DNA of 40,991 nt, from the NCBI GenBank assembly GCA_020536535.1, contig JAHLWZ010000607.1, positions 1-40,991 on the forward strand, read 5' to 3'. The notes under the pieces were generated by a model. The model was not told the DNA's origin, did no database searches, and saw nothing but the letters and a program-made list of their open reading frames with translations. Position numbers and translations under genes: made by a program. The first letter of the stretch is position 1, and every line of letters starts with the position of its first letter. Origin of the DNA: Pelomyxa schiedti. Taxonomy: Eukaryota > Protista > Evosea. Below are positions 2,843 to 40,157 of this stretch, one piece after another.

Positions 2843-2979
2843 ACTGAATGCAACAACAAAACATAAAATAAAAGAAAGAGGCCAAAACTCTCAAATTTTC
2901 TTGTTGTTCAACAAATACATGTTTTTTTTCATTTATTGTGGTACAGTGTTGTTGTGATTTTGTTAAGTTGGGGGCCCTC

Positions 2980-3788
2980 CTATAGCACTGTAAGAGCACG
3001 GGCAAGCTCGTGGGCGTTATTGGATCCAATGATAAAGGGAGACCCAACTGTGCTGCGAACAAGCACACCATCTGACTCACCTGTGGTGTAGGCCCACATG
3101 TCATGAGTGCTATTGTACCTTATTCCATAGCCTCCCATTCTAACAGTGTGGTTAGGGACAACAATTTTGGAAAATAGAGCATCCTTCATACTCAAGAGCG
3201 TTAATGGAAACGATGCGGGCTTCGGTTATAGACGTCAGAGGTATGACCTTACCAGCACAACACAATGGAAAGAACGATACCCGTAGTACACCCTCCTCCA
3301 CCTAAAAAAAAAAAATGAAATGTAAATGGAGCCGCGTGATAGACTTCAATGGCACTGAAACAAAAACTGAAAGTGGTTACTTAGCATTGATAATATATAT
3401 AATACAATATAATATAATATGATATAATGAATGTAATAGAAAATTAAATAAGTGCAGTTCTAAACTGTAAATTTTAAAATCAAAGAGCCAAGGGGAGGCC
3501 GCCTGGTACCTTTGTTGTCAGCGTGGCCGCGAACACCAAGAGCCACACGACGGCGGTCAGCCCGATGACGCAGCCGCCGACGGCGCCAGTCACGCCCCGC
3601 GTGTCCGGCGCGGAGACGACCACGACGGCGACCACCACGGCCACCTCGGCCGCGATCGTGACGCCGGCGACGGCCCACAACCACCACTGCCGGAACCGCT
3701 GCCGCTCAACAAACGACACGTCAAACACACCGCGGTGCGGTGGCTGTTGCTGGTACCACACGTCGATCCCGCTGCCCCCGCCACTCAT
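2980..3788 (-). CDS. DUF6141-like small membrane protein (bacterial-type), 3 exons, about 180 aa
   Basis: Exons 3788-3510, 3301-3192 and 3139-2980 join in frame via GT-AG introns: ...SFVERQRFRQWWLW-(2 hydrophobic helices)-LTTK|VEEGVLRVSFFPL...IPLTSI...ALE|MGGYGIRY...AY...GVLV...GSPFIIGSNNAHELARAL. The motifs F.E.QRFRQWW, RFFP, GG(W/Y)GIR and IG(S/T)..P.EL match what I recall of the bacterial DUF6141 family. Confidence 0.7.
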
Positions 3789-4042
3789 CCACTGATCTTT
3801 GTTTTTTTTTTTAATTTGTAATTTCAACAAACTCAAAGCGACGTATGGATCTGGATCTCGTTTATCACAAGCAGGGGAGTTAATCACTGTATTCCAAAAC
3901 CTGAGGAGGTGGATCTGTGACGGCATAGATGCACAAACAGTCCCTAGGCACAAGGAGGAAGGAGGAAACGGCCAAATCAGTCTCAATGTCCAAATGTGAG
4001 CAAAAGGAACTCTTTTTGAGAAACTAAAGAACAAAGAAAAAA

Positions 4043-7000
4043 ATGCCTGGAGCCGAAACCGTGACGATGGAGTCGGCACTATCACCCACTAACAGATCGA
4101 CATCAACGCCCCTCAGCATCACCGCACGCCGCACCTCTTCGTCCGCGATCTCCTCGTCCCCAAGCCCCCTCACAGTCCAACAGTCCCAGTCCCAGTCTCA
4201 GTCTCAGACCCAGTCCCAGACCCTTAGGGCTCAGTCTCCCAGCCAAATTCACCAACAGGTCGTGAGTCAGCAGCAACTGCCGTCAGTGACGTCACCCAAC
4301 CCGACCAACGACGACTACGGCCTGCTCAAGGTCTATTGGGCGTGCATCGTCGAGCACCGCCTCGATACCGAGTCGACGTCGCCCAACACGACGCCGCCGT
4401 CGTCCCCGCCTCCCATAATCCACGTCTCGGCGACGGCTGCCTCCCCGGCGGCCGCGTCGTCGGCTTCCGCGCGCGTGAGCGGTGGGAATTCCGGTGGGAC
4501 GGTTTCGCATTATGGGAGCGGTGGTGGGGGTGGTGGTGGGACTGTGACTAATAAAAGTGGTGCTGGAATATTGGGAAAGCAAAACACTGGAATTCCTGGA
4601 AAGAATGGAACTGGTGGTTCTGGTGGTTCTAATGTGGCAAGTACACCTTCTTCTGGTTCACCGTTGGTCTCTGCACAGTCTGTTGCAAATTCCGGCAGTT
4701 CCGGCAGTGGAGCTGCCTCCGCTTCGAATTCCTCTGGGAACTCTGTTGGTGGGGGTGCAAGTTCAGCTGTGAGCAGTGCTGCTAGCGGTGGAACCTCTGC
4801 GCATTCGAATGCCAGTGGGGCAGTTGCTCCTCCTCCAAGGACAGGCGTATTTGTGCCAATGGGAGATGTCACCAAGAACTCCACATCTAAAGTGAGGGCA
4901 ACTGTTGCCAGCACTACTCCCAGGAGAAGCTTGACTGCTCCTGTAGGTATCCACTTTCATGCTTTGCTTTTGCATATAATTTTGGGCTGACCTTAATTTA
5001 GTGCGGGTAACACGAAGAATGAAAAGGTATGTATCACTGTAGTGGAAACTTTTTCTTAATATGGTGAAGGCCGCGTTTCGCGCCCATAGAGAATAATACC
5101 TGGATCAGTACAATTCAACTGTCAATGTACTCGAGCAGTTTGGGGCCACACCTTGCTGAGGTGTATTCAGTTTTTTGATGGCATATTTTTCCTGTGAACT
5201 AAAACTCTCCACCAAAAAGGCCTGGAGAGGCGTAGAGGAATTCTCAGAGGAGATGCAACAATTTTTTGTAATTGCAGCACTAGCCGACTGTGTGCAGGTG
5301 CTAGAATTTAATGGTGATGACGTAAACAGTGGATTGCAGTTGAAGCTCATTGTTTTACCAACTCGTGAGCACACTTTTTTTTTTATTTTATTTTTTTTTC
5401 CTTCTGAACTTCACTTTCAGAGCATTTCTTGTGCTCCGTGACTTTTACTGCTATGGTGCAAGGTTCTGGGAAAATATGTGCACTTACAATTTTCGCCAGA
5501 CAGGAATATCTTCCTAGATTTCTAGAAGTTTATCCCAGAGCCCTTGATAGTGTGTATATTTGGCACTTTTTTTTTAAGGAACTAAATTGTCACACTAGGA
5601 CTTGGCGTGGCCGCTTGCCGGCTATGCCTATTGATATCTCAGGTTAACAATTCTTTTTTCCCCTCTACAGCACTTACTTAGAGCAGGATTCGGACACGAC
5701 TCTTCAGATTCACAAAGAAATTGAGGCAATGTGCACAAGCCTCAATGTACTTATGTTATGCATCATACCATTACCCAGCTCTCCTCACTCGGATCTGAAC
5801 ACTATCACCAATCTTTGGGGTGCTGACTTTGTTTCCCTGTATGTTCTTCGCTCGTCTACAAAGAGTAACCCCTCACCAGAGCTGTCACATCGCATTTGCA
5901 GACTATGTGTTGCACTGTAGTTATTGGTGACATGAAAGAGCACGTTAATATGGTACTCCAACTCCCATCTAACAAACTAATATCATCAGTTTGTAAACGC
6001 CCTCTCTATATTCGAGGATGATACACAGAGGGCCAAGTCCAGCCTTGTTGTTGATAAAAGACCTTACTCTCCTGACGTAAAGTCTTTTCCATCTTTACCA
6101 TTTCTAATGCTTGCCAGCTACTGTTACAAGGTGTAGTTGGCTCAGCCTCACAAATTACTGATGACCTGCTTTTCCAAAGTCCACTTCCAACAACTGTTAT
6201 TGATCTCAAGCAAATCACCGTTACACAGGTCTATACCTCACCTTATTTACTCCTCTCAGCGCCAGTAGGTTGCAGGATTTCACATTTTTAAAAAACGACA
6301 AAAGGATCATATCAAAGCGGAAGTGGAAAAATGCCTCCCTTATAGCAACATACCAATACCAGTTACTGTTGCCACCGGCGGACCTAATGCCGTTAACGCT
6401 GCAAATGCAGCCAACGGTCTCCAAGCCGAATATGTGGCTGATAGAAGGTAAATTGGCGGCAATCTCCATTCCGTTCTCACCATCCAATAGGGAGCCCTTG
6501 AATTCTCCTTCATTAATTTGCTCGAGCTTGGTAACCAACATGATTTACGAGCTGCACGATTTGCCGTAGTACGTGCCACTCTCCTAACTGTTAGTTAATA
6601 ACATCCCCAAGCCATCTCCAGCCGGCTGTTGTACACAATTGGATGCACTTATTTTCCAGATATGCCGTCACACTAGTTCTGCTGGCAAATAAGCTACAGT
6701 ATTTAATTCTACTAAATATGGACCGCATACTGATTCTCCACCAGACCTACAGCAACAACATCCTCTGATGGGATGTTTAAAAAGATATGCGCTGGGCTCA
6801 ACCTCTCGGAGGCTGATGCTATTGTAATTTTGGCAGTTGCCGGTACTCACCTCATTCTACACTCTAAAAACAAAACTCTCCCAAATCACTCGATCCTGAT
6901 TTTTCTTACCAGAAAAAATATCGCCGGGTATACACCTTCACATCTTTGGAAATTGGTATGAAATACATTCCGTTAGTGCACAAAACTAACTACGCATGCA

Positions 7001-7378: not shown

Positions 7379-9442
7379 ATGGCCGGTATGTTCGTCGTTT
7401 TTGCGACCCAGATCTACGCATAGTAATATACGCCTACATGTCTACGCCGTTACCAATAGTGAAGCGCCATTCTAACGTCGTTCACAATTTTTTTTTAAAA
7501 AAAAAAAAAACATCCTCAGACGCACCGCCGTTACCCCCACGTTTACCGCCGAGACAAACGACAACGACACCTGCTCCAGCGCCGTCGCCCGAGCCGACGC
7601 CTGACAGAACGTCGCTTACAGCCTCGAAGCACCATTCGTCTCATTCCCACCACTCGTCCTCTCACGGCAGCAGCGGCAAACACAAGTCGTCCTCCTCTCA
7701 CTCCCATCACTCCTCCTCGCACCATAAATCCAGCCACTCCTCCTCACACAAAACCTCGACCTCTCCAAAGCCGGATGACAACGCTGCCGAGAAGACGGGC
7801 ACAGAATTGGCAAATGAAGAGACGGCGGATAAGAGTGAGAGTGAGAGTGATGAGGGAGAAAATGAGGAACAAGAGCAGCCTGAAACCTCCACACCAGCAG
7901 AAGAACCCCTTCCTGAAGGCTGGGAAACGAGGATAGAGCCTACCACGAAAAAGACCTATTACATCAACAAAGCACTCAAGCTAACGCAGTGGAACAGGCC
8001 TGTAGGTGGTGGCTCGAGCTCTGGGTCATCTGGATCCTCAGACCCCGCTGCAAGCCGCGACAGGACCCTTTCCAGATCAAGCATTGATAGTGGAAATGAA
8101 GACGTCTGCATTTGATGTCTTCTTTTGCATGTTGCTAACTTATTCCTTCTAGTTACCTCCAGGATGGCAAGCTACACTTGATAAGAATACAGGAAAGGTG
8201 TACTACTACAACAAAATTGAGAAAAAAACTCAGTGGACAAAGCCTGTTTCTGACACACCTTCAAAGTGTATGACAAGAGTCCAAAGTAATCCAAGTTAAC
8301 TTCTTACAGCTCCGACACCAAGTATTAATAGTCCCGCTCCTCCCGCTTCGACACCGCCACTGTCATCTTCTGGCGCGTTTATGCCGCCTCCACCACCACT
8401 GGTTACGGAGAAAGGCAGTGCAGAACTTCTTGCGTCACTTACTTCAACTCCTGTTATGGCTTCCAAACCCACAACAGCTGCAGTTGTTGCAAAGAAGCCA
8501 GGTTTAAAGACCAGTGCCGTGAAGAAATCCTCTCGTGATGAAGAATTTGATGAGAGCCAGAGTCACGCCAAACAAAACAAAAGCACTATCAAGTCGGTTC
8601 TACACACTTTCTTGTCTAAGAGGTTGTCTCTAAGTCTATTGCTTTCTTCTCTAACCCCGCCAAAAGACCAACCAAGCAGCAGCTGGTGGAAAAACACATT
8701 CTTGCCGATGATGGTACGTCAGCGAGCACCACCCCTACCTCAAGTGCTCCTCCACCATCACATCCCCCAACGACTGCTCCACCAGCTCAAGCCATGCCCC
8801 CAGCAACTCCGCCACCAACCCAAACAATCCCACCAGCAGCTCCCCCAATGCTGTCAACTCCAGCAGCCAAAACACCAGCCGCCAAACCGCCTGCCAGTAC
8901 TCCACCACCCCTTCTTGCCACTCCAATGGCATCAGTACCAGCGGCCAAGCCGGCATTACTTGCTACACCTGAAACAAAACCAGTTGAGAAACAGCCTGAA
9001 AAACAAGAAGATAAGGTAAAGCCAAGAGACCAAAACAAGCACAAACAAACAAACAAAAACAGGAGGCTTTACCGCCAGGCTGGTCTTCCGTCAAGGACCC
9101 CACATCGGGTAAGGTATATTATTACCACAAAGCTACCAAGGTCACATCTTGGACAAAGCCTCAATGTTAGTACCAAAATTACTTCCATCAAACTAACTTG
9201 TTCTCTCTTCCATGCTTTCCTTCACCGATACAGTTGAAGAGGTAAAATTCACACAACCGAATTTACAAATAAATAACGCGCCTACTCAGGGACAACCAGC
9301 ACCGGCAGCACCCCCAGCCCCTCCAGCCGCCGCCGGAGGGCTGCCACCAGGATGGAAAGAAGTTGTGGACAAGACTTCTGGAAAGACTTACTTCTACCAC
9401 AAGGAAACAAAGAAGACCCAGTGGACTCGCCCAACAGAGTAG
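7379..9442 (+). CDS. WW-domain adaptor: WW-WW-RPEL-like-WW with Pro/Ala/Ser/His-rich linkers
   Basis: ATG GCC G|intron|AC gives MADAPPLPP. WW domains: LPEGWETRIEPTTKKTYYINKALKLTQWNRP, LPPGWQATLDKNTGKVYYYNKIEKKTQWTKP and LPPGWKEVVDKTSGKTYFYHKETKKTQWTRP. An RPEL-like motif appears after removing intron 8623-8666. Confidence 0.85.
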
Positions 9443-20403: not shown

Positions 20404-22829
20404 TTATGTACAAAGAAATCCCAAAAAATTCATAAGAGGAGAAAATCCCGTTTGTTTTAAATAATTTTCTTCTGGATAGACGGAGCTCCTTCTGCTCGTT
20501 TTGTTTTTGTAGATAACAATAACCATTAGACACCGAGCCTTACAATACTTGTCACTGCCATAGCTGCTGCTGCTGCTTGTGGGGAAATAATGTTCCATTT
20601 CAACTTGATAGCTTCCAGGGCTAGTATCCAGTGTTAGGAAATGTGAGGGTAGGAGTTTCAAGAAACCTGTTGGGTGTCCTTCATCGGCAAGCCTTTTTAT
20701 CATGCCAAAGCATTCAAATGCGCCAGCATCACGCACAGAATTGTGATTGAGGTTTAACAACTTCAATGTGTTGTTGACTGTGATGATTTTGGTCAGTGCG
20801 ATCATACTCTCGTCGCCGAGGTAGTTGCCCCGGAGGTTAAGGGAGGTAATTGTGCTGTTTAATCTTAGCATTGCTGCTGCTTCAATTCCGGTTGGATCTC
20901 CAAGACTGTTCCCTCTTAGAATGAGTGTTTTTACACTTGTGTTTGTTGCCATAGCCTTCAATATTCCAACTGCTCCTTCATCTTCATCCAAACTGTTAGG
21001 ATAAAGGATTGAAGGTTGACAACACACCGCCAATAGAATTATACCGTAAATCAATGTGTTGAAGAGTTCTATTGCTGTATAAGGCTCTTCCAAAAGAAAG
21101 AGCGCCAATAGTTCCAATTTCATTAAAACTGCTTTGTGTCAAAGAGACTAAACCAAAAAAAAAAGTTGCCTTAAATCAATAGATCGATACAATGTATCAC
21201 AGAGTAGTGACTCGGCAACCTCGATAGTTCCAGAGTCACCTTTAAATGTGAAGCAACGTAAATTGACCACATATGTTACCTATTCCTTGGTCTCCAAGTA
21301 CTAAACTTGTGCCTGGGAGGCATTTGCATATCAGTGGAGGAAGGTCTAGTGGAGAAAAATCAAAACAAAGAAACCACTATCAGCAATTACCAGGATGTGC
21401 CGTCTTGGCTACGAGCAACTGAAGTCGAAGAGCAGATTCCTTCAACATAAGTTATTAAAGACATAATTACAGTTAGATTACGGCGCTGACATAATAAAAG
21501 TCAAGTATCTTGTTATAATAACAATAAATTTACTCTCTGTCTGGACTGCTCTAGTTCGTTTGACAGGACCTCTGCTCTTTGCTCAGCCGGCAATTGCATT
21601 AATGCCTTTTGCTCCTGGTACCACAGTGGACCTGAGAGGCACGAGTATGGATCCTTCGTCAGTGGAGACCACTTTACTGCTACTGGAAGCCGGCGCTCTT
21701 TAGCCGGCGCAGATGACGGATTTGGTGATACATGTTTTTTTAGTAGTTGTGACTTGTGGCGGGAGACAAGCACGTCTTGGGAGTCCCCAGTTGGGGTAGT
21801 GGGTGGAGGAGGTGTTGTAGCAGTAGCGGATCGAGAATTAGTTGCTGGTAATACAGGGAGAGAAACTTGTCGAGAAAAGTGTGAACTGTGTGTCTTTCGG
21901 GGTGCAGTTGGTGTCTGTTGCTGTTGTTGCTGTTGTTGCTGCTGTTGCTGTTGTGTTTGCTGTGGCTGTTGGTGTTGGTGGTGTTGTGATTCGTGGTGGT
22001 GGGATTGGTGATATTTATCATATGTTTTTTTTATCATGACAACGGGACTTTGCCTAGCGAGAGGCTTTTGTATTTGTACAGGCGGGGGTATATCGTACAC
22101 ACGAGGGTGTGAGGTGGCCGACGCGCACGAGAGCGCAGGCACCGGCTCGGACACGAAGGCAGGATGCCTGCTCGTCAGCGGCGCAAGTGTGGGCGTCGGC
22201 GCTGATGGATTAGACGCCAGCAAGGTGGGCGACATTGCCTTATGGGACTGCGACGAAGAAGAGGAAGGGGAAGAAGAAGAAGAAGAAGAAGAAGAAGAAG
22301 AAGAAGAACCGGAAGCGGAAGGCGGGGAAGCTGTCTTGCCACCAAGGGTGGTGCCACTGGCCACATTCGAACTCACGGAAGATCTCTGCGCAGGAGAAAC
22401 ACTCACGCTAGTGCTGCTGCTGATACTGATGCTGGTGCTGGTGCTGCTGGTGGTTGTTGTTGTGGTGGGTGCAGCAGTAGATGCCGGGGTCAGTGTCCCT
22501 GAAGGCGTAGGGGTAGTAATTGCCCACGCAATTGGCGGCGATATTTGACATGTGCTGCTACTGCTACTACTGCTACAGCTACAGCTGCTGCCTGGGCTCG
22601 CGCTCGACCCGGACTCGAGGGACTGTACGTGGGCGCCGCACGACGCGAGGTTCGGAACCGGCGGCGAAGTCGTGGGGGCGGGCAGCAGCATCGCGGGCGC
22701 CGAGTGCGCCGTGGTGTCGCGCTGGTGGACCGACGACGACGCCGGCGCGGCGCTGGCGCCGCTCTTGGCCGCTGCGTTTGTAGCGTGTCCGGGGACCACT
22801 CCCCTGCCGCCGTCGCTGGTACCAGACAT
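20404..22829 (-). CDS. RNI-like (NLRC3-type) leucine-rich-repeat protein with long Ser/Thr/Gln-rich disordered N-terminus
   Basis: The large first exon 22829-about 21540 splices to RRNLTVIMSL..., then repeats NEIGTIGALSFGRAL...LQHIDLRYNSIGDEGA, TLILRGNSLGD, TSLNLRGNYLGDES and LLNLNHNSVRDAGA. 3' end approximate. Confidence 0.75.
21916..21975 (-). repeat. CAG/CAA-rich coding repeat (polyQ/His tract)
   Basis: Encodes QHQQPQQTQQQQQQQQQQQQQ in the LRR gene. Confidence 0.85.
22270..22308. repeat. (GAA)13 coding microsatellite (poly-Ser on the minus strand)
   Basis: Directly visible. Confidence 0.9.
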
Positions 22830-29000: not shown

Positions 29001-32000
29001 ACTCTTGCAGAGCAAAAAGCTACTGAAGGTTATGAGGTGGAATCAAAAAATTTGTCGAATCTTTACGATCAAGTGTGGGACCTTTTCCCAGGTACAGCCA
29101 TCCTACTGTCTCACTAGGTTTAATTAATCTCAAGCTTTTTGCTCTTCTCCTGTCGGAATCGATAAGGTGGATGAAGTACCCGCTTTCTTTCTGTTCTAAC
29201 TCTAAGTAGTCCTTCCCAAAACTCGCACCGATCCTTGGGACAATTGTGAAAGAAAAACCAACTCAAAATATAATTTTGGCTGGGCTGTGTACACTTGTAA
29301 CAAGTTTACGAAAAATTCTGTCATCTGAAGAAAGCACAGAAAAGGAAAAATCTGGTAAAAAATTATGCTCCAGCCGGAGTGATATGACAGAAATTTAGAG
29401 GCACAGAAAGCTCTCCAAGTCATGGGCAGATTTGGCAAGAACTTTCTTCCCTGCTTATTAAATGTCATGAGTACCTCTGCCACTTGCAATAACAAGCTCA
29501 TCTTGGATACTATCAGAGCTTATGCCTCTTTGAGTCCTACTGAGGTCACTTTTTTGACTTCTGTGATTTTTTTTCTAAAAAAAAAAACCAGGTCGTGAAC
29601 GGTGTTTTTAAAGAAGTTTTTACCCAAGTGATAGCACAAGCATCTCAAACTCAGATCCCAACTAATGAAGATAATCCCTCAAACCAGGTATTTTGTGTCA
29701 AACCAAACACACTCCAACTACAGTTTTATTGTGTTGTTTCCCCACACCTAACAAGACTGGAAGAAAATGGAATCTGAAGGGGCTGCCTATCTTCAAGGTC
29801 TGGTTTTCTTTTTTTTACTACCCAGTTGGTCATACTACTACAGTTCTCGCTGCCCTCTGTTCGGCCTTTGCAGCCCATCTAAATAGCGATAACCTGCAAG
29901 CGGTACTTGACGTCATAGAACCACTTCTTATGGTAAGGAAGAAAAGTGTTGATGCTTTATTGACAAAAAAAAATAAAAAGCGCCAAGAGACAGTTGTACA
30001 AAAGCGAGTGTGGAATCTCTTAGCAGTAATTTGTATGGAAAATGAAGAGCTAGTTAATAGGTTGTCTGATAAGCTGCGTGCCATCATCGTCAATGTCGAT
30101 CCGGTTCCTGCGGCAAAAAGGGTGTGCTTTGTAGTCCTCTTGGTTTCTAGAAGTTTACCTCCTATAGTTTTGGCTGAAGTTCTGCTATCATGTTATGGTG
30201 CACTTATCCCAAACAAACCTGCCCCTTGTTATTGAAGTTTTGTTTCCCCGTGTGCTCATCCATCTTCTGCATGCTGTAAAAGAAAACAACCTGAAATCGA
30301 GGTATCTATTATGATTTGAGTAAGCCCTGTTAACATTTTTATAAGGAAGCAAGCAAACAAATTACTGGTGAAGTTAGCCTATGTAATGTCTCAGACAAAA
30401 CAGGGACTTCAGGGATTCGTGAATCTACTCCTTGCATCTCTGGCGTCAAAGGAACCTCATACTATCTCTTCCTGTGTACTTGCTCTTGCCCGCGTAGTTT
30501 ACGAGTTTCATGGTGAAAACCTCAACCTCTAGTGGCCATCTTATAACCTCACAGAAAAGTTGGATGTTGAACAAATTCAAACATTGATGAACCTAATTTC
30601 TCTCCTACTTGATTCTGCAACCACGCAAGTTTCCAAGGCGGCATTGAGCTTCATTAAAGTATGTGTGGTTGTTCTCCCTCGAGCAACTCTGAAGCCAGCA
30701 ATCCCCAAATTGGTATTCCTTCCTTTCAACTTTCTTTCTTTACCCATTGTACAGGTCGAAAAACTTGGAAAATATGCAAAACAATCGCATAAAACATACA
30801 GATTAATACTGAAGCATATTATGGAGAGAATGATGAGAAAACTGGGGTATCCAAGTTAATATCCCGTTTTGCCTCTGAAGTTATCAAGATATGAAGAAGT
30901 TGCAGCATCAGCACAGGAAGGATTTAGGAGGATTCTAAAAAATATGATGAGATCAAAAGCAAACAAGCTCACGGTGAAATATTAATACCCTCTCCAAATT
31001 TTAATGTTCTACCTTTACAGAAAAAAGGACTTAAGTTCGAGCAAACCGACAGTACCCCAAAGCCCTCTTTTGATGCGACTATGCGCGACAATAAATCTAG
31101 TGACGATGATGACGATGAAGCGGAATTGCTTGACCTACCTGTGTGCTCCACCACTTTGGGTTTTTATTATTAAACACCGTAGTCGAGAAAGCGGCAACGT
31201 GCACCTCTGGAGGCAGGGGTTGACAATTTCGAAGAAGGAGATTATGAAAAAGACGCGGATGAAGAGGAAGAAACGGATTTACTTGACGGAAACCAGCTTC
31301 TTGAGAGTGAAGTCAAAGCTAAACCCGCAAGGCACGACCAAGCCAACGTGGCACTTAAAAAGGATAAAGAGTCCGAACCTGTTTTCCTTGATGCAGATGG
31401 GAAAATCGTAGTCAAAGAGGTACCTACCCTCATTGGAAACATTCCACTTAGCGAAAAAAAAAAAAAATCACAAGGATATTAATGAAGCACCTCTTCCATA
31501 TAGCCCAAAGAGAGCCAAATTGCAACATTCAACAGTCATTGAAGCCAAGCCGGTACCAATCAAGTCAGAAGCGAAAGGAGGCGCATCAGCACAATCTTCC
31601 GCAGAAGAAGGAAGGGTTTGTTCCCTCGTTCCACTTTTTTTTGCTCTCTAACACTGGACAGAAAGCCATGTACCAGAGAATGATCGATAGAAGACAAAAG
31701 GCCCTTGTCACCAAACAGGAGAATGAAAGGAAGAAAATGACTGGAGAAAAGTTCAGAGCCAAGAAAGCCGTAAGTGAAACTGTACCTTCACTCTTTTTTT
31801 CATATAGACCACAGGGAGGAGATATTCACCGGAACGGAAAACAACCCTATGCCTACATCCCAATGAATCCAAGACTAGGACTGAAAAAGAAGTCTGTCCA
31901 CCTCTCCATCAATCCAACTCAACAATAAAAACACACAACACACAGGGGCAAGCCAGTCATTAGAAAAGGAGACCAATTCAAAGGCATCATTGGAGCCGCA

Positions 32001-32063
32001 AAAAGAGGTTCTGATCGTGGCTCTCGCGCCAAACGGAGAAAAGTCGTTGCCTCAAAGCCGTAA
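26084..32063 (+). CDS. RRP12: RRP12-like ribosome biogenesis protein (HEAT/ARM repeats, NUC173 region); start approximate
   Basis: Many short exons of helical repeats; KALQVMGRFGKNFLPCLLNV; QKRVWNLL; ISSCVLALARVVYEF; VSKAALSFIKVCV; acidic/basic tail with GEKFRAKKAGGDIHRNGKQPYAYIPMNP (cf. GDVKRKGK.EPYAY.PL). Stop TAA at 32061-32063. Confidence 0.9.
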
Positions 32064-32346
32064 CAAACAAAACAAAATTTTTTTTTGTTTCTCCACATTT
32101 TTCATCCGTTAGACGAACACCGAAACGACTTCTACGGGAGAATTCAGCAGTGAACTTTTTCCCTGCAAGCTTCCATTGCCTTTGATACTCGTTGCACCTT
32201 CAGTTCTGTACAAAAGGAAAAGGAACAAGAGATTTCATAGATCGGTCTTGAGAGCAACATAAAAAGAAATTATTCTAGCGTTTGGTGGCACATCCGCAAC
32301 ACTGTGGTACCCATTGACTCAACTCAACCATAGATCTTGAACAACA

Positions 32347-33815
32347 ATGTCGGATGAATTGAGGCGTTCGGCGTCGTCCGGAGGACTGCGTAAGAGTGTG
32401 TCGTTCGAGCCGACTACGATGATAGCCGGTGGCGCACGCGACGAGCTGAAAGGCAGTGCCATCAGGAAAATGTTTCAGCTCGGACTCGAGCTCAAAAAGT
32501 CGTTTGGCGCCGCCAACGTGTTCGATTTCAGTCTGGGCAACCCAGCCCTCGAACCTCCTCCAGAATTCGAAGCGGCACTGCTCAGGTGCGTTACGGAGCA
32601 TGGGCCAATGAGCCACGGTTACATGCCAAATCAAGGACTCCTTGAATGCAGAACTGCTGGTGTGCTTTTCTCTACGTTTTTTTTTCCCCAAATGACCTAC
32701 CCAATTCAACTTTAGTGGCAACGTTGGTCAGTAGACTTCAGGGTGTTTATGTTGACCCAGACAGAGTTATTATGTCCGTGGGTGCTGCCGGAGGTATCAA
32801 CGTAGTTTTGAAGACAATCATATCCCCTGGAGACGAGGTTTGTAAAAATTATGCCTGCCCGGTAGCATCATTGACCACGATTGCCAGGTGATTAGATTGA
32901 TCCCATACTTCCTGGACTACGAACACTACATCACAATCCCTGGCGGTGTTATTGTAACCGCACCAACACAACCCAATTATGAACCAGACGTCAATGCACT
33001 TCGAGCAGCTATTACCCCCAAAACCCGCGCTATTATTATCAACTCACCAAATAATCCCACCGGCAAGGTAAAATAGGCAAGGTTCATCTGTAATTCTAAT
33101 TCTTTTTAGGTTTATAGCCAGGAGGTTATGAACGATGTTGGCGAGCTTTTGGCAGAGAAATCACAAGAATATGGGCGCCCAATATATATCATCTCCGACG
33201 AACCGTATACCAAAGCCCCTCTAATAAGTCTATTAATTTTCCTGATGCAGCTATGCACGACTTATCTATGGTGGAGCCAAAAACTATTCTGCATTTGACT
33301 GCTACAACTACTCCTTTGTCATCAGTAGTGTGAGTAAGGACCTTTCTCTGCCTGGAGAACGTCTCGGTTATGTAGTGGCCAACCCAGACATGCCCCACTG
33401 GCCAAAAGTGAAGGCGGATATGATTCAGTGGACCCGTGCGCTCGGGTTTGTAAATGCACCAGCACTGATTCAGCGGGCCGTTGCCATGTGCCTTGAGTCT
33501 TCTGTTGACATCAACTGGTATGCCAACAATAGAGACCTTCTCTGTTCTGGCCTCCAAGAAGCCGGCCTTGAGATAGTTTTCCCTGAAGGTGCATTCTACG
33601 CATTCCCCAAGTGCCCCCCAGGAGTCACCTCTGAGCAATTCTGTGACGCACTGGCAAAGGAGAATGTACTGTGCGTTCCTGGAACACCCTTTGGAATGCC
33701 TTTCCATGTCAGATTCTGCTATGCAGTAAGCCCTGAAACAATCACAGGAGCAATACCCAAAATTATAAAATCCGTGGCTGCAATGAAAACAACAACCACT
33801 ACCGGAAGTTCGTAA
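32347..33815 (+). CDS. PLP-dependent class I/II aminotransferase (bacterial aspartate-aminotransferase-like)
   Basis: [30 protein letters not shown]; [20 protein letters not shown]; [12 protein letters not shown]; ISDEPY; [15 protein letters not shown] (PLP Lys); PEGAFY; VPGTPFG...VRFCY. At least four GT-AG introns. Confidence 0.92.
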
Positions 33816-34041
33816 TAAAAAAAATATGATATTTTTACTTAAAAGTTGTTGCTTCTATACCTCATAGCCTTCACCTGGTGCTGTTTGTCAAGCATGTCAG
33901 ATGGAATGTTGGACTCTGGTGAGTTGCTTGAGGCTTCTATGGTGCCGGCATTGCGTGCAGGTACCCAAGGGAACCCAAACCAACTTGGGACTCGGGTTCA
34001 GGGAAAACGGTGGAGGCCACATTTGTTTCATTTTTTGACCA

Positions 34042-37000
34042 ATGGCGACCAACACGGCTTTCCGGGTGAATGAGTGTGAATGCCACGGAATTGAGCACGG
34101 CGCAGATGTTGTGGTTCACACTATGCCGCTTGTGCTTCCAAGCCTCGTGAACGTGTACGACCACGACGTTCCCGCTGTCGGCCCAATTCTCGAGGCAATG
34201 GGTGTGTGGGTGCCTCTCTAATTGATGGAGTTTTAGTTTTCGAAAAAAAAAAGCTCTCGTCTCGTGAGGGCCTGATGGATGTCACAGAGTTTCACAAAGA
34301 AGAGGAGCCAATGCCAGTAAATGATAAGATGTGGGCATACAAACACGGATCAGGGGCACCTTTGGTGCTCAATCAGTCAGAGTCTGTGAGGCAGTTCTTT
34401 GATTCAATCAGAGAAAAAAAATTTGCAACGGTGTCAGTTCTGGGCCCAACGAGGACTGGCAAGTCAACACTGCTCAATTACGCAATCCAGATTCTCCAGG
34501 GCACAAACACTGATCCGTTTGTCACCTCTGGTAAGCAAGCCCCAAGTCCAAAACAAACAAAGTGCAGCACACGCGGGATATTTTTCATGACTGCTTTGCT
34601 GCATTTTAATGACACCTTCTCTTTCAGACAACTTGAAATTTGGTTGCACTTCTGGCATTTGGTTTTTCCCAAGTCTGATCAACGTATTGACGTTCATTTA
34701 TTTTTGGTTGCCTCACACAACACAGATTCCCGGGTGTGAGATACCAGTTCTGTTGGTTGATGTTGAAGGACTCTATGCCGTCGACCCCATGAGTTCGCGG
34801 CGAAAATCTGATGTGGACCAATACTATTTCACACGGTTGTGGATCCTGGTCTTCTTCATGAGCAGCACAATTTTGTTCCTGCGTCGAACTCCCTCTTGGA
34901 ATGAACAAGACCAAACCACTTTGAAGGTTGGCCGCAAACACACAGATGAACTTTTATTGCGTTTTGTTTTGACATTAGCTGACATCACCACAACTTTTTT
35001 CCTGATCAGGACCTCGCAGATGCAATTTCTGATTTCAAAAGCAATCGGCAGAGTGACATTCTTCTCAGAAAGAACTGCCCCTCTTTGTTTGCATACATTG
35101 CACAGAATTTCGGGCAGACTTGGACACTTGAGCAAGGTGACCTTCACCCCCAAATAAACAACCAACAAACATTCAAATAACAAGACGGTGCATTCTGGAA
35201 GGATGAGAATGAGTTGGAATCCAAGCTTCCACCAGAATTTGAGAAACTGTTTCCAAACAGAGCCAACCCATTCAACTACTTCACACTCCCACCATGCTCC
35301 TATGAGGGAAGACCAGACGTTCCAACACATGCTGATTTTATTGCAAAGTTGAAGCAAATCCTTTTGCAGGTTGGAACATTGACCACTTCACCTCTCAGGC
35401 TGGTATGTGTTGTCCTTCAAGGCATATTGCAAAAATCAGGCCTGCATACTGACAAAAAAACACACAGGTGGGGGATAAGCCAACGGACACCATCGAAGTC
35501 ACAGGGAGCACATTTCTTTTCTTCATACAGACAGTCTTGGAGGCTGTAAATGGCAAACTGGAAACACCACAGATGGTCAAGGTTGTTGACTTTTACTGTG
35601 ACTCCAAGCGACTGGAGGCTCTTGATGCTGTGTTTGCAGATGCCATGGTCCACTTCAATACAATAATTCGTTCTGAAAAACACCCCATTTCTCCCTCTTT
35701 TGTCCAGGTTTTCACATTTCCTTTTGTTTGATAATCTCCTTCCCTTTTACATTTCACTCAAATTTAAATTCAGGTGGCAATTGGACTTGCAATGAAATTT
35801 ATTGAAGACCCACTGGGAAAAGTTGTGGCAATGAAGAGACCAACAGTCGAGGGAAAGACAAAAACCTGGGATTTGGCAAGATTCAAAAGAGAGGTGGAGG
35901 ACAGGATCACAGCTGAAAGTGAAGCATTGGTTCGTATATCCCCCAAAGGAAATTACATATACTGCCTCTCTTTTCATCCCTGATATTTGAACACAGACAA
36001 ACAAATTTCGGCAAGAAGCAGCCACGTTCTGTGCTGAACAAGTTGCAATCGCTGTCAGAGACTTTTTCTTGCACACCACCGACCTCACGAGTTCCGAGGC
36101 TCTCATGGAAGCCGCACACAAGAAGATGCAAGAGCTGACATCGCAGCTCCAGCGATTCGACCCGCTCCACACGGAATCCATCGACACGTTCATTCCAGCA
36201 GTGAAGCAGAGGCTGAACGAGCACACCAACGCTGCAACTGTTGCCCTCCACGTTGTGATGAGAAGGGTTGCGGAACCGTTCTTTCAGGCACTTGGAAAGA
36301 ATCTCCCGGCGGATGTCAACGTAGATTGTATTGAGGGAATGTACCACAGTGAATTGTTTGATTCAAATGGGGAGGCAAAGCAACAGGAGCTAAAGTGTTC
36401 TGGTATGGTTCCCACCTCCGACTTAAAATAAAAAACAAAAAAGATGTGAACACAGCATCACTTCAGGAGTTAGATCTTCTAAATGCTTACAACAACGAGA
36501 GCAAGAACATCCACCCTGCCTGTCGATTTACACTTCCATTTGTAACCGAGCAACTCAGGAGGTTGCACAACACTCTTGCAGCAGAAGGTGCGAAGGCACT
36601 TCACGTGATGCAATGGGTTGAGCTTGAGTCTTGTCTCCGTTGTGTCATGAGGGGTGGGTGCAATGGGCCACCACTTCCAATCAAGAGCTGTGAAGACTTT
36701 CAGACAATCCAGAGATGGACTGGTGCCGACATCCTCCAGCTGGTGTGGGCGCCATCATTCGAGTGCCTGAAGGGCCAGATTCTGGATCGGTTCATGCAAC
36801 ATGGTGAAAGGTTGCAGCAGTGGCTTCTGGACAAACAAGTGGACGTGAGTGTTGCCGATACCATCGTTCAGATATTCTGTGAGTCTGTGGCTGTGATTTT
36901 CTCAAAGATTCCACTTCCTGCGTGTTTTGATCTGACTGTGGTTTTCCCCGGTGACTGGAAATTACCTACGGGAATTGATTTCAAGTTTTCAGCTTCACTC

Positions 37001-39819
37001 CCAGTTAATCCTGTTAATTTCGTTCATCTTGGAACAATTGAAAACCTGAGCAACAAGAAGATAGAAACGTTCCAGTTCTCACTGAACCCTCTGGATGACG
37101 GAAGGAAAGCACAAGAACTGAAAAGACATCTTGAGAAACTCCCATTTGGGCCACGGTGTCCGTCAGCTGAGGTGTTGTATGGTGCAACCAAATTTTTCTG
37201 CCAGAGAGTTGAATACATTTGGACCTTCTTTGAACCAAAATGCCAGCCAGAAACAGCAGCAATCACGGGCTACCAGAGAATGGTCTTTGAAACAACAGGG
37301 TGAGCCGTGTTCCTTCCATTTCGTCATTCACTGATACTCACATCTGACTGGTCTCAAAGGGAATACCCAAGAGATGCCCGCATTGTGATTGACAACAACA
37401 GGACATTCCTTGCTTTCCCACTTCCGTTCTCAAAAGACCTGGGAATTGCACTGTCATTGCGCTTTCCTGCCAGCATTGGAGCACTTGAACTCTGCCCACA
37501 GGTTCAAATCTTCATCTCACTCATTGGTTTCTTGATCTCACTTGGAGAATCAACCCAAAAAAAAAAAAACTTTCAGGTTCATGTGACTGCACCGTCGGTA
37601 AGTCATCTGTTCCGATTTCTGCTCCAGGCCCAGCAACCAATCATCGATGTTTCATCTTCCTCCTGTTCACCCACAGATGGCAGCAGTGGGGAGTTTGTTG
37701 TGACAGTGATCAGCACTGACAATTTGTGCATCTGTGCCAGCAAGCAAACGGAAATCACAGTGACACTTTTACCACCTCCTGTTGAAGTTCAATCCAGACC
37801 AACTCCTGGTCAACGTGAAACTGCTTGCACTCTTTCCAAGCCGTCACTTAAAAGGGTGCTTTTCACCAATGACGATCGGTTTGAAAACTTGAAGCGATAC
37901 ACAACTCCAAGTCTGGAAGTCTCAGTTCTCTCCAAACCTTGGGACTCATTCACGTGGAGAAAGACATTCAACAAATACGCACAGAGGTGCATTGACAACA
38001 ACACACCTGTGTGGAGGGATGAATTAATTGTTCACCTGCAAATATTGAGTGCTGGTTTCACCTTGCATGCTTTGAACCCAAGCTCACCTGGTGTCTATTT
38101 CCTCATCAACGAAAAGGGTGATGACACTTGTAACGGGTCCCCAGCAGCCTTTATGGCAGAGATTACATGCTCCAAGGAAGAAGAGAGAATCGACAGTGGC
38201 CAAGGGCTATTGTGTGGGGTGTTCCACCCTCCAACCAAAGCACTGAGCAAGGCACACAACAAACTGGCACCGTCGCCGCAGCACCCCGCACTGAACAGTG
38301 CAACGGAGGTGTTCATCGTGAACATGGACTGCCTCCATGTCGCACAGCAGCTCATGCAACAGTTTCCTGGTGAACTCACAGGTTTCTTTCTTCTTCCCTT
38401 TCCCTTTCCCCCTTGTGATCTTCTTTCTCACACCCTTCTTTATCTCTCTGTGTGTGATTGATAATTGATTTCTTCATTCACACATAAAACAAACCACTTT
38501 GCCAAAAACAAAACAACACAACAGCTGTTCTGAACATGGCAAACTCCACGACACCCGGGGGTGGATTTGAGAATGGGAAAAGTGCACAAGAGGAAGACTT
38601 GTGCATGCGGACATCACTGTTCCCAGCACTGAAGCAGATTGGTTACCCACTGCCGCTATGCGGCGCCATATTCACTCGTGACGTCACGGTCTTCAGAAAT
38701 GGCTCCTCGAGTGGGTTCCAGTTCCTCACGGATACTTGGACTGTGAATGTCATCTCAGCGGCTGCGCTTCACAACGTTGACAACAAGTTCACCGTGAGGG
38801 ATCCAAGGACTGGGGAGGTGTTCCTGTCACCGACTGCGGCAATGATCACGAGATACAAGATTGAACAACTATTGAACACTGCAGCCATGTACAATATGAA
38901 GCAGCTCGTCCTTGGAGTAGGGTCTATGGTTGATGACGCTGATGTTGCAGGCCACGTTGCCGCCATCTTCAAGGAGGTTCTGCAGCAATACGCCGGCTGC
39001 TTCTCAAGGGTGTACTTTACGACTCTCCCGAACCCTTACTCACCAAGTGACAGCCCCAAGTTGTTCAGAGCCTTTTCCACACACTTTGGCCCCACAGGCT
39101 CAACCCCAACTCCAACAAGAGGAGCCACAGAATCCCACCCGCCAAGAACCTCCAGCATCAAACAAGCCGTCGGGCCGTGCGTCATGCCGGCTTCCTTCAA
39201 GACCGGCCGCATACCCCTCAGCCACACAGTGGCCAACATACGCACGCCGGGGGTCATCTGCCCCAACGGCGGGACCTGCACCGACGCCGCGACCGGGCAC
39301 TTCGGCGCGATGATACACCCCCCGCCGTGCCCCTGCCGCCTGACCTGCGCGTGCACGTCGCCGGTGCACCGCGCGATGTGGCGGCACCGCGTCAAGTGCC
39401 AGCAGGAGGGGCGGTGCCTCAGCTACTTCTCGGCGGAGCGCGACCTGCACTGCTCGCTGTTCTGGCACCCGCCGCCGCGGTGGTCCCGCACCTGCCGCGA
39501 CGGCGCCACGTGCCCGCGGAGGGTGGAGGCGAAGCACTGCCTCGAGTACTACCACGCTCCGCCGCCCTGCCCGACCGGCGCCTCTCAGCCAGCACTACTG
39601 CTGCAGCAGCAGCGGGGACAGCACGTGACGGGCCTGCCGCCTCCCTGCTACATTGCAATTCCACCTCCGCAGCTCCAGCCGGCATCTCCCCTGCCACCTC
39701 AGAGGTCATCGCCTTCACCGTCACCATCCCCGTCCCTGACAGAATCCCCAGCCCAGTCACCCCTTCTTTTCTGGCAACCACGGAATCGGAGTAGTAACAG
39801 GACCACCTTTGGAAGTTGA
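34042..39819 (+). CDS. Large multidomain protein: GBP/atlastin-like GTPase + helical/unknown region + bacterial-type PARG (DUF2263/TIGR02452) + 4 PBZ-like zinc fingers
   Basis: G1 VSVLGPTRTGKSTLLN (core 34443-34466), G2 FVTSD...CTSGIWFF, G3 LLVDVEGL, and CPSLFAYIAQNF. The frame is kept across all traced GT-AG introns up to VFIVNMDCLHVAQQL...AVLNMANSTTPGGGFENGKSAQEEDLCMRTSL (motif 38557-38595), ...VISAAA...LVLG...VA.IFKEVL...F.RVYF, then four C-x5-C-x6-10-H-x5-H units. Confidence 0.8.
39259..39555 (+). other. Array of four PBZ-like (C2H2, CCHH) zinc fingers
   Basis: CPNGGTCTDAATGHFGAMIH; CPCRLTCACTSPVHRAMWRH; CQQEGRCLSYFSAERDLHCSLFWH; CRDGATCPRRVEAKHCLEYYH. The first two match the PBZ spacing C-x5-C-x6-H-x5-H exactly. 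Confidence 0.72.
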
Positions 39820-40057
39820 TTTCAAGCTTAAACCCCACTGAAACAAAAGTTACAGAAGCAATTTGTACATAAAGATTTGGCATCTCTCAAATATTACTTT
39901 GGTTTTTAAAAAAAACACCACATCACGTTAAGTTTAGAGGTCTCCAGTGGCCAGGGATTGCAAGTATTGTGAGTAGCTGTTCTTGACCTCAGTTAAAATC
40001 ACCGACATCATCGATGCAGCGTCGGACTTGCTGCACTTCTTCACAAACGACTTTGGG

Positions 40058-40157
40058 NNNNNNNNNNNNNNNNNNNNNNNNNNNNNNNNNNNNNNNNNNN
40101 NNNNNNNNNNNNNNNNNNNNNNNNNNNNNNNNNNNNNNNNNNNNNNNNNNNNNNNNN
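40058..40157. other. Assembly gap (100 N)
   Basis: 100 N counted. Confidence 0.97.

Follow-up and report, generated by a model that had tools for sequence, protein, structure and literature searches.

Large GTPases of the guanylate-binding protein (GBP) class and ADP-ribosylation are both central to animal cell-autonomous immunity, and we know of no protein that joins the two. Among the closest described systems are the GBPs and atlastins, whose nucleotide-dependent self-association has been described (PMC8565484), and the poly(ADP-ribose) glycohydrolases (PARGs) of the microbial type. For the latter, Rack et al. 2020 (PMC7050489) describe a diphosphate-binding loop which holds the diphosphate and, by means of a G[A,V][F,Y] patch, strains the distal ribose. 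A bacterial-type PARG with repeats of the poly(ADP-ribose) (PAR)-binding zinc finger (PBZ) is known from the rotifer Adineta vaga (PMC4245714). Here we describe a gene of Pelomyxa schiedti, an anaerobic amoeba of the Archamoebae, which is located at 34042-39819 on the plus strand of contig C607, one of the 5337 contigs of a 52-Mb assembly; the whole stretch of 40,991 nt that was analysed is referred to as the window. It is a single nuclear gene of 13 exons (4905 nt, 1634 codons, no internal stops), and the product of ~1634 amino acids consists, in this order, of a G domain, a helical region, an orphan region of ~480 amino acids, a microbial-type PARG, four CCHH zinc fingers and a low-complexity tail. 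The explanation that we favour for the whole, at about even chances, is that this copy is expressed and constrained, that it carries a hydrolase-dead pseudo-PARG on a GBP-class GTPase, and that it is a possible partner of an active paralog encoded on contig C459.

The PARG of the window shares with those of T. curvata (3SIG) and D. radiodurans (5ZDA-5ZDG) the macro fold, the sequence VLN.A...PGGG-x7-QEE and the motifs LVLG and HVA..F..V. Unlike these enzymes it is embedded in a 1634-amino acid eukaryotic multidomain protein, and their diphosphate loop, GA.GCGAF.NPP, is replaced in the window copy and kept in the C459 paralog. The rotifer PARGs (Adineta vaga; Rotaria magnacalcarata P0007/P0008, 1959 amino acids) resemble it in being large eukaryotic proteins with a microbial-type PARG and scattered C-x5-C-x6-H-x5-H fingers, some of which have the same C.DG..C...KH..E(F/Y).H flavour. 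They differ in having the PARG near the N-terminus, a RanBP2 finger (the Rotaria protein carries this and a PBZ finger according to Pfam) and no GTPase domain, and the identity of 34-37% is confined to the PARG domain. As far as we have searched, the PARG-plus-finger half is already known and its fusion to a GTPase of the GB1/RHD3 type is new.

A first-pass annotation of the window, made from the sequence alone, had joined GTPase, PARG and fingers into one polypeptide and knew of no description of such an architecture. This still holds: no other protein with GBP and PARG was found, in PARG searches that left out proteins of ~475-1500 amino acids, and a full-text literature search for GBPs or large GTPases with a macrodomain or PARG returned no paper describing such a fusion. 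The proteins of 1496-4760 amino acids sharing words with the PARG part came from Pelomyxa (two), metagenomes (two) and Rotaria, with a GBP match only in Pelomyxa; those of 1122-3570 amino acids sharing words with the GTPase part were the two Pelomyxa proteins only. The 100 Atlas clusters nearest to the PARG part contained PARG alone or PARG with Macro, and none combined GBP with PARG.

One gene of thirteen exons

The open reading frame (ORF) track is fragmented over 34042-39819 (+), and the pieces join through GT..AG introns. One frame had previously been traced through canonical introns, among them 36403-36443, 37300-37359 and 38382-38524, and all three are present in our 13-exon model, which has 12 introns of 41-143 nt, every one of them GT..AG. 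A search for the path with the fewest introns gave unrealistic gene models and was replaced by exon definition guided by the C459 paralog. This full-length paralog is 87% identical to the window gene, identical and diverged blocks together forming a mosaic. It has the donor GT and acceptor AG at homologous positions for all 12 introns (24/24 splice sites), and the introns themselves have diverged in sequence and length. Indels between the exons of the two genes measure 3, 6, 9, 12 or 39 nt, i.e. multiples of three, and dN/dS is lowest in the GTPase (0.31), rising to 0.40 in the PARG, 0.46 in the middle region and 0.52 in the helical part. The G1, G2 and G3 motifs, GGG-x7-QEE and the four fingers were all located in the window frame where they had been claimed to lie. 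Since the same architecture is found on two independent contigs (C607 and C459), with remnants on a third (C266), the window gene is not an assembly chimera.

Three of the introns (34927-35009, 35137-35184 and 35930-35996) were confirmed by single-cell RNA-seq contigs. One such contig is unbroken over 34751-34924 and then joins 35008, which makes the corresponding segment of exon 4 exonic, and others cover exon 13 and the 3' end (39077-39217, 39400-39567 and 39574-39875). They show zero mismatches to the window where C459 differs; the window copy itself is thus transcribed and spliced. The spliced 5' RNA and the 3'-exon RNA were found in the same run. Counting against a single gene is that no RNA contig was found to bridge 36075-39076, and none joins the GTPase part to the PARG part. 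We nevertheless infer, strongly, a single transcript across the whole gene.

The stretch of 36075-39076 without RNA coverage is also what favours a locus of two adjacent genes, one for the GTPase and one for the PARG and fingers, merged by gene prediction; the NCBI model at this locus does already hold one false merge, described below. We regard two genes as very improbable. There is no in-frame stop between the GTPase and PARG parts, the boundary of the orphan region and the PARG has neither a stop nor a start codon, and exon 12 has a single methionine, mid-exon, ~190 residues in. The longest inter-exon gap is 143 nt, with GT..AG ends that are kept in the paralog. C459 repeats the order of parts, and even in the C266 copy with its deletion GTPase and PARG are joined. 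The upstream aminotransferase, by contrast, has its Pfam domain complete and a genuine stop codon at its end.

This aminotransferase accounts for the present annotation of the locus. The NCBI protein (P0004, 2040 amino acids) is named "aspartate aminotransferase"; its junctions are identical to those of the 13-exon model from ~residue 470 onward, and its first ~425 residues are an upstream class I/II aminotransferase, the Pfam domain of which is complete and the frame of which closes at a TAA of its own (33816-33818). Exon 1 of our model (34042..34201) has its probable start at ATG 34042, with a second in-frame ATG at 34123 that is kept in the paralog. The NCBI model of C459 begins with its own MAT.T methionine, like ATG 34042, the similarity between the loci starts only near 34100, and coding-type conservation of exon 1 against C459 begins at ~34100, with many synonymous changes. 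The aminotransferase stop, the paralog start and the onset of similarity together show the merge in P0004, which attaches exon 1 to the aminotransferase within 32000-34105 of the window, to be an artefact of annotation. The NCBI models of the window gene and of C459 furthermore both skip 26 exonic residues, encoded at 34849-34926 in the window. A consequence of the name that the false merge has produced is that the GBP and PARG architecture is hidden from annotation-based searches.

The PARG domain and its diphosphate loop

The PARG domain spans the intron 38382-38524. Exon 12 (37577..38381) completes the orphan region and encodes the macrodomain as far as its N-terminal half, and exon 13 (38525..39819) the catalytic loop, the remainder of the macrodomain, a linker, the four CCHH fingers and a Pro/Ser-rich tail, with the stop codon at 39817-39819. 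P0004 scores 67 bits with PF10021 (PARG_cat_microb, cut-off 23.5) and 69.5 bits with TIGR02452 (cut-off 50), both above the curated cut-offs; exon 12 contributes PARG_cat_microb profile positions 43-115, and the TIGR02452 profile match covers 52-252. The sequence is alignable to the PARGs of D. radiodurans and T. curvata. An AlphaFold2 model of the domain (70 homologs) has a mean pLDDT (predicted local distance difference test) of 78, with a core of ~90, and a Foldseek search matched it best to DrPARG (5zdg, 4.7e-13) and TcPARG (3sig, 4.2e-12), followed by canonical PARGs and MacroD-type macrodomains; having been built with the family alignment, this model cannot show the effect of a change in one loop. 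The catalytic loop, GGGFENGKSAQEE, lies at 38557-38595 (+) and reads GGG-x7-QEE, intact and complete as first noted, with the Q, E and E invariant across the 70 aligned sequences. Judged from sequence and predicted fold, the identification of the domain as a microbial-type PARG macrodomain is solid.

The second loop is different. The wider motif LVLGA.GCGAF.NPP.HVA is near-invariant in the 70-sequence alignment, and here the window reads LVLGVGSMVDDADVAGHVA; the diphosphate-binding consensus GA.GCGAF.NPP within it has become GVGSMVDDADVA. DNA alignments to C459 and C266 place the lesion at 38917-38952 (+), where twelve codons, VGSMVDDADVAG, stand in place of the loop AIGCGAFNNPPD. In the window copy other residues have taken all nine near-invariant loop positions, those of the G[A,V][F,Y] patch among them; in the 69 homologs they are occupied by A in 69, G in 68, C in 69, G in 69, A in 64, F/Y in 68, N in 65, P in 66 and P in 63. 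In C459 the exon reads AIGCGAFNNPP and is followed by an intron of 104 nt, and the decayed C266 copy has the same exon end and intron. This intron is missing from the window copy. Since C459 and C266 share the loop and the intron that follows it, the state of the window copy is derived, and the alignments indicate a loss of ~100 nt, comprising the end of the exon and the greater part of the intron, after which 36 nt remain and the frame is kept. Logan contigs from two runs cross the lesion with at most one mismatch; as these are independent, the lesion is not an assembly slip of C607. It had been missed in the first-pass annotation.

As read from its sequence, the window copy has probably lost the ability to hydrolyse ADP-ribose, and perhaps also the ability to bind it. 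The TIGR02452 score falls by 40 bits, from 109.9 in the C459 paralog to 69.5, and with the diphosphate-binding loop gone the earlier proposal that this protein erases PAR is doubtful for this copy. Two observations tell in the other direction: the replaced loop still starts G-V-G-S, which would make some ligand binding possible, and purifying selection persists on the PARG domain of the window. If the copy were an active read-and-erase enzyme, its fingers would bind PAR, its PARG would hydrolyse it and its GBP-like part would coat membranes. This is favoured by the intact GGG-x7-QEE, by a macro fold that is kept with high pLDDT, by the purifying selection on the window-lineage PARG domain and by two fingers with exact PBZ spacing. 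We consider it distinctly unlikely, given the replacement of nine of nine near-invariant positions in the diphosphate loop (for the role of the patch see PMC7050489), the 40 bits by which TIGR02452 falls under the paralog, and fingers that have no PBZ profile match and lack the usual aromatic and basic PBZ residues.

The window copy is not just a dead gene, being still constrained and transcribed. When C266 is taken as the third sequence, the codon changes assigned to the window lineage in the C-terminal half of the PARG are 10 synonymous and 5 nonsynonymous (P ~8e-4 against a neutral ratio of 1:3), and the three changes directly after the lesion are all synonymous. The lesion holds a cryptic 34-nt GT..AG (38917-38950), the splicing of which would shift the frame; that only synonymous changes are found just after the lesion argues that it is read through. 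One could still regard the window copy as a decaying pseudogene that is transcribed by chance, with C459 as the real gene of the family. The loop lesion did arise when the end of the exon was deleted together with most of the intron, the fingers are degenerate, the tail is truncated and of low complexity compared with that of C459, the C266 copy is an evident pseudogene, and the cryptic intron, if spliced, shifts the frame. Set against these points, 1634 codons are open, 24/24 splice sites are kept, dN/dS is below 1 throughout, most of the window-lineage changes within the lesion region and beyond it are synonymous, and the RNA is spliced and specific to the window copy. On balance we think decay rather unlikely, and retain the reading of a constrained pseudo-PARG.

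The family comprises three loci in this genome. The C459 copy (P0001; 2720 amino acids in the NCBI model) is intact and has all PARG motifs, followed in that model by ~10 fingers, a further region of ~530 amino acids and a VWA_4 domain. Its last modelled exon, at 2201-4831 (-) of that contig, encodes the ~10 CCHH fingers and the ~530-amino acid region, which has no Pfam match; downstream of these the P0001 model holds three more fingers and the VWA_4 domain with its D.T.S motif resembling a metal ion-dependent adhesion site (MIDAS). The window copy (~1634 amino acids) has lost the diphosphate loop and has four fingers and a short tail. The C266 copy, at ~1480-2900 (-) and modelled by NCBI as a 308-amino acid hypothetical protein (P0009, Pelo_3434), is a pseudogene with frameshifting indels of 10, 1, 11 and 5 nt and an internal deletion of 3.4 kb. 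The deletion brings the G domain up against the PARG immediately behind its GGG, and a DNA run shows this junction too, in the form of a skip of 3401 nt. As this copy keeps introns 2-5 it is not a retrocopy. The family is specific to this lineage, and we infer a fast turnover, with one intact, one altered and one pseudogene copy and mosaic gene conversion between them.

The GTPase, the middle region and the fingers

The features described in this section are all on the plus strand. Exon 2 (34288..34530) carries the G1 P-loop GPTRTGKS (34443-34466) with the arginine of the GBP/atlastin type and matches Pfam GBP profile positions 8-49. Switch I, the G2 motif CTSGIW (34645-34662), is in exon 3 (34628..34683). 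Exon 4 (34726..34926) carries G3, DVEG (34759-34770), and the hydrophobic strand/helix segment of 26 amino acids (34849-34926). The expected G4 site lies within 35088-35111 in exon 5 (35010..35136), both flanking introns of which are RNA-confirmed, and the G domain ends in exon 6 (35185..35402). Exons 7-9 (35468-35707, 35774-35929 and 35997-36402) encode the helical region.

The G1, G2 and G3 motifs coincide with their counterparts in atlastin-1 and 9jju, the best sequence matches in the PDB, which align over G1-G3 with E values of 0.03-1 that are not significant alone. Among the Pfam families GBP is the best match of the GTPase. In common with GBPs and atlastins (hGBP1, atlastin-1) the protein has a P-loop with an internal arginine (G..RTGKS), a switch I of T.GIW and a G3 of D.EG, in the same order and spacing, and after the G domain the motif V.G..F...I..V..A.N.G..P followed by a helical region. 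As shown using the Atlas language-model feature search, the GTPase falls among GBP, RHD3 and "GB1/RHD3-type G domain" clusters at 0.96, and the top ten clusters carrying a Pfam family are all (10/10) of the GBP/RHD3 type.

Membership of the GBPs is marginal, and several results weigh against a close relationship to them. The Pfam GBP profile (PF02263, cut-off 21.1) scores 22.1 bits on P0004 (E 1e-4), over profile positions 8-91 only, and 20.6 bits on P0001, which is under the cut-off, both NCBI models having been scored without the 26 residues of the G domain that they skip. When the ORF pieces of the window were scanned the piece containing G1 reached 14.8 bits (E 0.017) and the rest gave no GBP match at E<=1. 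The GBP_C profile (PF02841) matched neither P0004 nor P0001. The putative G4 strand, which we placed by eye against hGBP1 and take to be correct only tentatively, would be FAYIAQNF in all three copies, with AQNF instead of (T/A)(L/V)RD, the motif for guanine specificity, and by that placement no RD-type G4 motif is recognisable in the G domain. An AlphaFold2 model of the GTPase and helical part, from a two-sequence alignment with 26 residues missing, gave long low-confidence helices only (mean pLDDT 38), too poor a model to judge the fold by. Compared with GBPs and atlastins the protein is very divergent (22 bits); neither a CaaX box nor a transmembrane segment was found in it, and it has more than 1000 additional C-terminal residues including an enzyme domain. 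The assignment that we accept, on motifs and feature search, is to a divergent G domain of the GB1/RHD3 type (GBP/atlastin class). Of the GBP-type GTPase originally proposed, the G1-G3 motifs and the class have stood, and a close GBP has not.

The middle region of ~480 amino acids (model residues ~603-1080) is encoded by exons 10-11 (36444-37299 and 37360-37501) and the beginning of exon 12. With 284 amino acids of this region, a HMMER scan made without a profile across 1.84 billion representative proteins recovered only the C459 paralog as a relative; two further matches in that scan proved to be spurious repeat proteins and were rejected. It has no match in Pfam or in the Atlas feature search, and is, by these comparisons, lineage-specific.

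The four CCHH fingers (39259..39555, C-x5-C-x(6,6,10,7)-H-x5-H) have spacings of 5-6-5, 5-6-5, 5-10-5 and 5-7-5, and the first two thus have exactly the PBZ spacing. They share with the PBZ fingers of APLF and CHFR (PF10283) the 5-6-5 arrangement of Cys and His, in two of the four, and the ending H...h.HP. Unlike those, they have no Pfam match and lack the Y/F-G and Y-R-K-N-P residues, which are typical of PBZ, the canonical PBZ copies of this genome included. Neither the window exon nor the C459 tail matched Pfam PBZ (cut-off 22.7 bits) at E<=1, and a six-frame genome scan with this profile, also at E<=1, found canonical copies elsewhere and none at the window fingers. With a local PBZ profile, built from these canonical copies and the rotifer fingers, the window tail scored -2.8 bits (shuffled tails up to 7.3) and one finger far downstream in the C459 protein 18 bits. 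The C459 fingers are nearer to PBZ in general, the first retaining C.YG..C and HF....HP. The array of four PBZ-like fingers seen at first therefore survives as CCHH spacing in all four and PBZ-exact spacing in two, without a match to the PBZ profile, and we read the window fingers as putatively PBZ-derived CCHH fingers that are degenerate.

The finger segment (39259-39555) is also unusual in its base composition, having a GC content of 0.74 and a GC content at third codon positions (GC3) of 0.955, compared with a GC3 of ~0.5 in the remainder of the gene. By eye, the homologous C459 stretch appears far less GC-rich in the alignment. A search of the genome for a donor of the GC3-rich segment matched only C459.

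Genomic setting and possible roles

The genome holds at least 25 PARP-catalytic loci in its 52 Mb (e.g. on C733, C187, C800, C797 and C1157), some of them in intronless ORFs of 1800-2560 amino acids, a large repertoire for a genome of this size. It also holds at least nine intronless ORFs of ~1900-2300 amino acids having a VLIG/URGCP-like G domain, GKQSTGKSY.LNHLLG...GGRCT.G (C900, C505, C22, C802 and C974), several of which share a contig as tandem copies. This genome has thus expanded its writers of ADP-ribosylation as well as its large GTPases. The giant GBP-matching ORFs were rejected as alignment partners of the window GTPase, as they are VLIG/URGCP-like and have only the P-loop in common with it. 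Another microbial-type PARG exon occurs on C571 (22000-27000), followed by degenerate PBZ-like fingers of the P.C.Y..C... types, and matches to the PARP domain (17182, 32065) lie within 10 kb of it.

Elsewhere in the window a WW domain is encoded at 7438-8112 (+) and leucine-rich repeats at 20407-21123 (-), and the other scanned ORFs of at least 200 amino acids have no Pfam match. An assembly gap of 100 N (40058-40157) falls inside a downstream plus-strand ORF that begins at ~39983; this gene is unrelated to the C-terminal extension of the paralog.

By analogy with GBPs and atlastins, the GTPase and helical part would undergo nucleotide-dependent self-association, and it may carry the ADP-ribose-directed module of PARG and fingers to a target. 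The C459 protein, in which every catalytic element is present, is likely to be an active ADP-ribosyl or PAR hydrolase. The window copy, with its loop lost, weaker fingers and shorter length, would most likely be a hydrolase-dead pseudo-PARG, and it may be a non-catalytic partner or regulator that co-assembles with C459 via the common GTPase. Recurrent loss of macrodomain activity is outlined for the immune PARPs in PMC10221186. So far as that account goes, PARP9, PARP14 and PARP15 resemble the present family in being conflict-associated multidomain proteins with macrodomains, and their loss of activity parallels our pair of a probably active and a probably inactive paralog. They differ in that MacroD-type macrodomains are there attached to ADP-ribosyltransferases, and here a PARG-type macrodomain is attached to a GTPase.

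What such a protein might act upon is a matter for conjecture, to which the defence role, the coating of membranes and the reversal of toxins from prey or endosymbionts that were suggested in the first-pass annotation all belong. Pelomyxa is portrayed in one account as living in consortia with prokaryotic endosymbionts (PMC10579272). We would prefer a role in conflict or symbiont management over housekeeping because of the turnover of the copies, the many PARPs, the giant GTPase genes and this endosymbiotic lifestyle. Against it stand the PADLOC defence models, which gave no match, and the neighbours in the window (the WW-domain gene, the leucine-rich repeat gene and the aminotransferase), which form no obvious defence cluster.

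The family might instead serve ordinary PAR metabolism or the DNA-damage response, with the GTPase as a regulatory or oligomerisation module and no part in microbial conflict. A link of PBZ and PARG to PARP-dependent DNA repair is indeed described (PMC4245714), PARPs are numerous in the genome, which holds several canonical PBZ genes as well, and there are no defence-island neighbours. However, the family is lineage-specific and evolves quickly, with copies gained and decaying, which would not be expected of a core repair factor; the housekeeping could fall to other microbial-type PARG loci of the genome, which are simpler; and characterised GTPases of the GB1/RHD3 class act at membranes or on pathogens (PMC8565484). 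We hold a repair function to be rather improbable, and a conflict or symbiont-management role remains our preference.

In its boldest form, this preference would make the family the first case of a dynamin-superfamily GTPase of the GBP/atlastin class combined with an ADP-ribose eraser and reader, in which the C459 protein, its self-assembly being controlled by nucleotide, would remove ADP-ribose at the compartments of symbionts or prey on which it assembles, with the window protein as a dead co-assembling regulator or decoy. We put this forward as speculation that is unlikely to be right in full. If true, it would connect two arms of cell-autonomous immunity, large GTPases and ADP-ribosylation, within an amoeba whose permanent endosymbionts are bacteria and archaea. 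The intact and loop-less paralogs provide a natural experiment on what the diphosphate loop contributes in microbial-type PARGs, and a natural fusion of GTPase and PARG offers a handle on whether large-GTPase scaffolds deliver enzymes to their targets.

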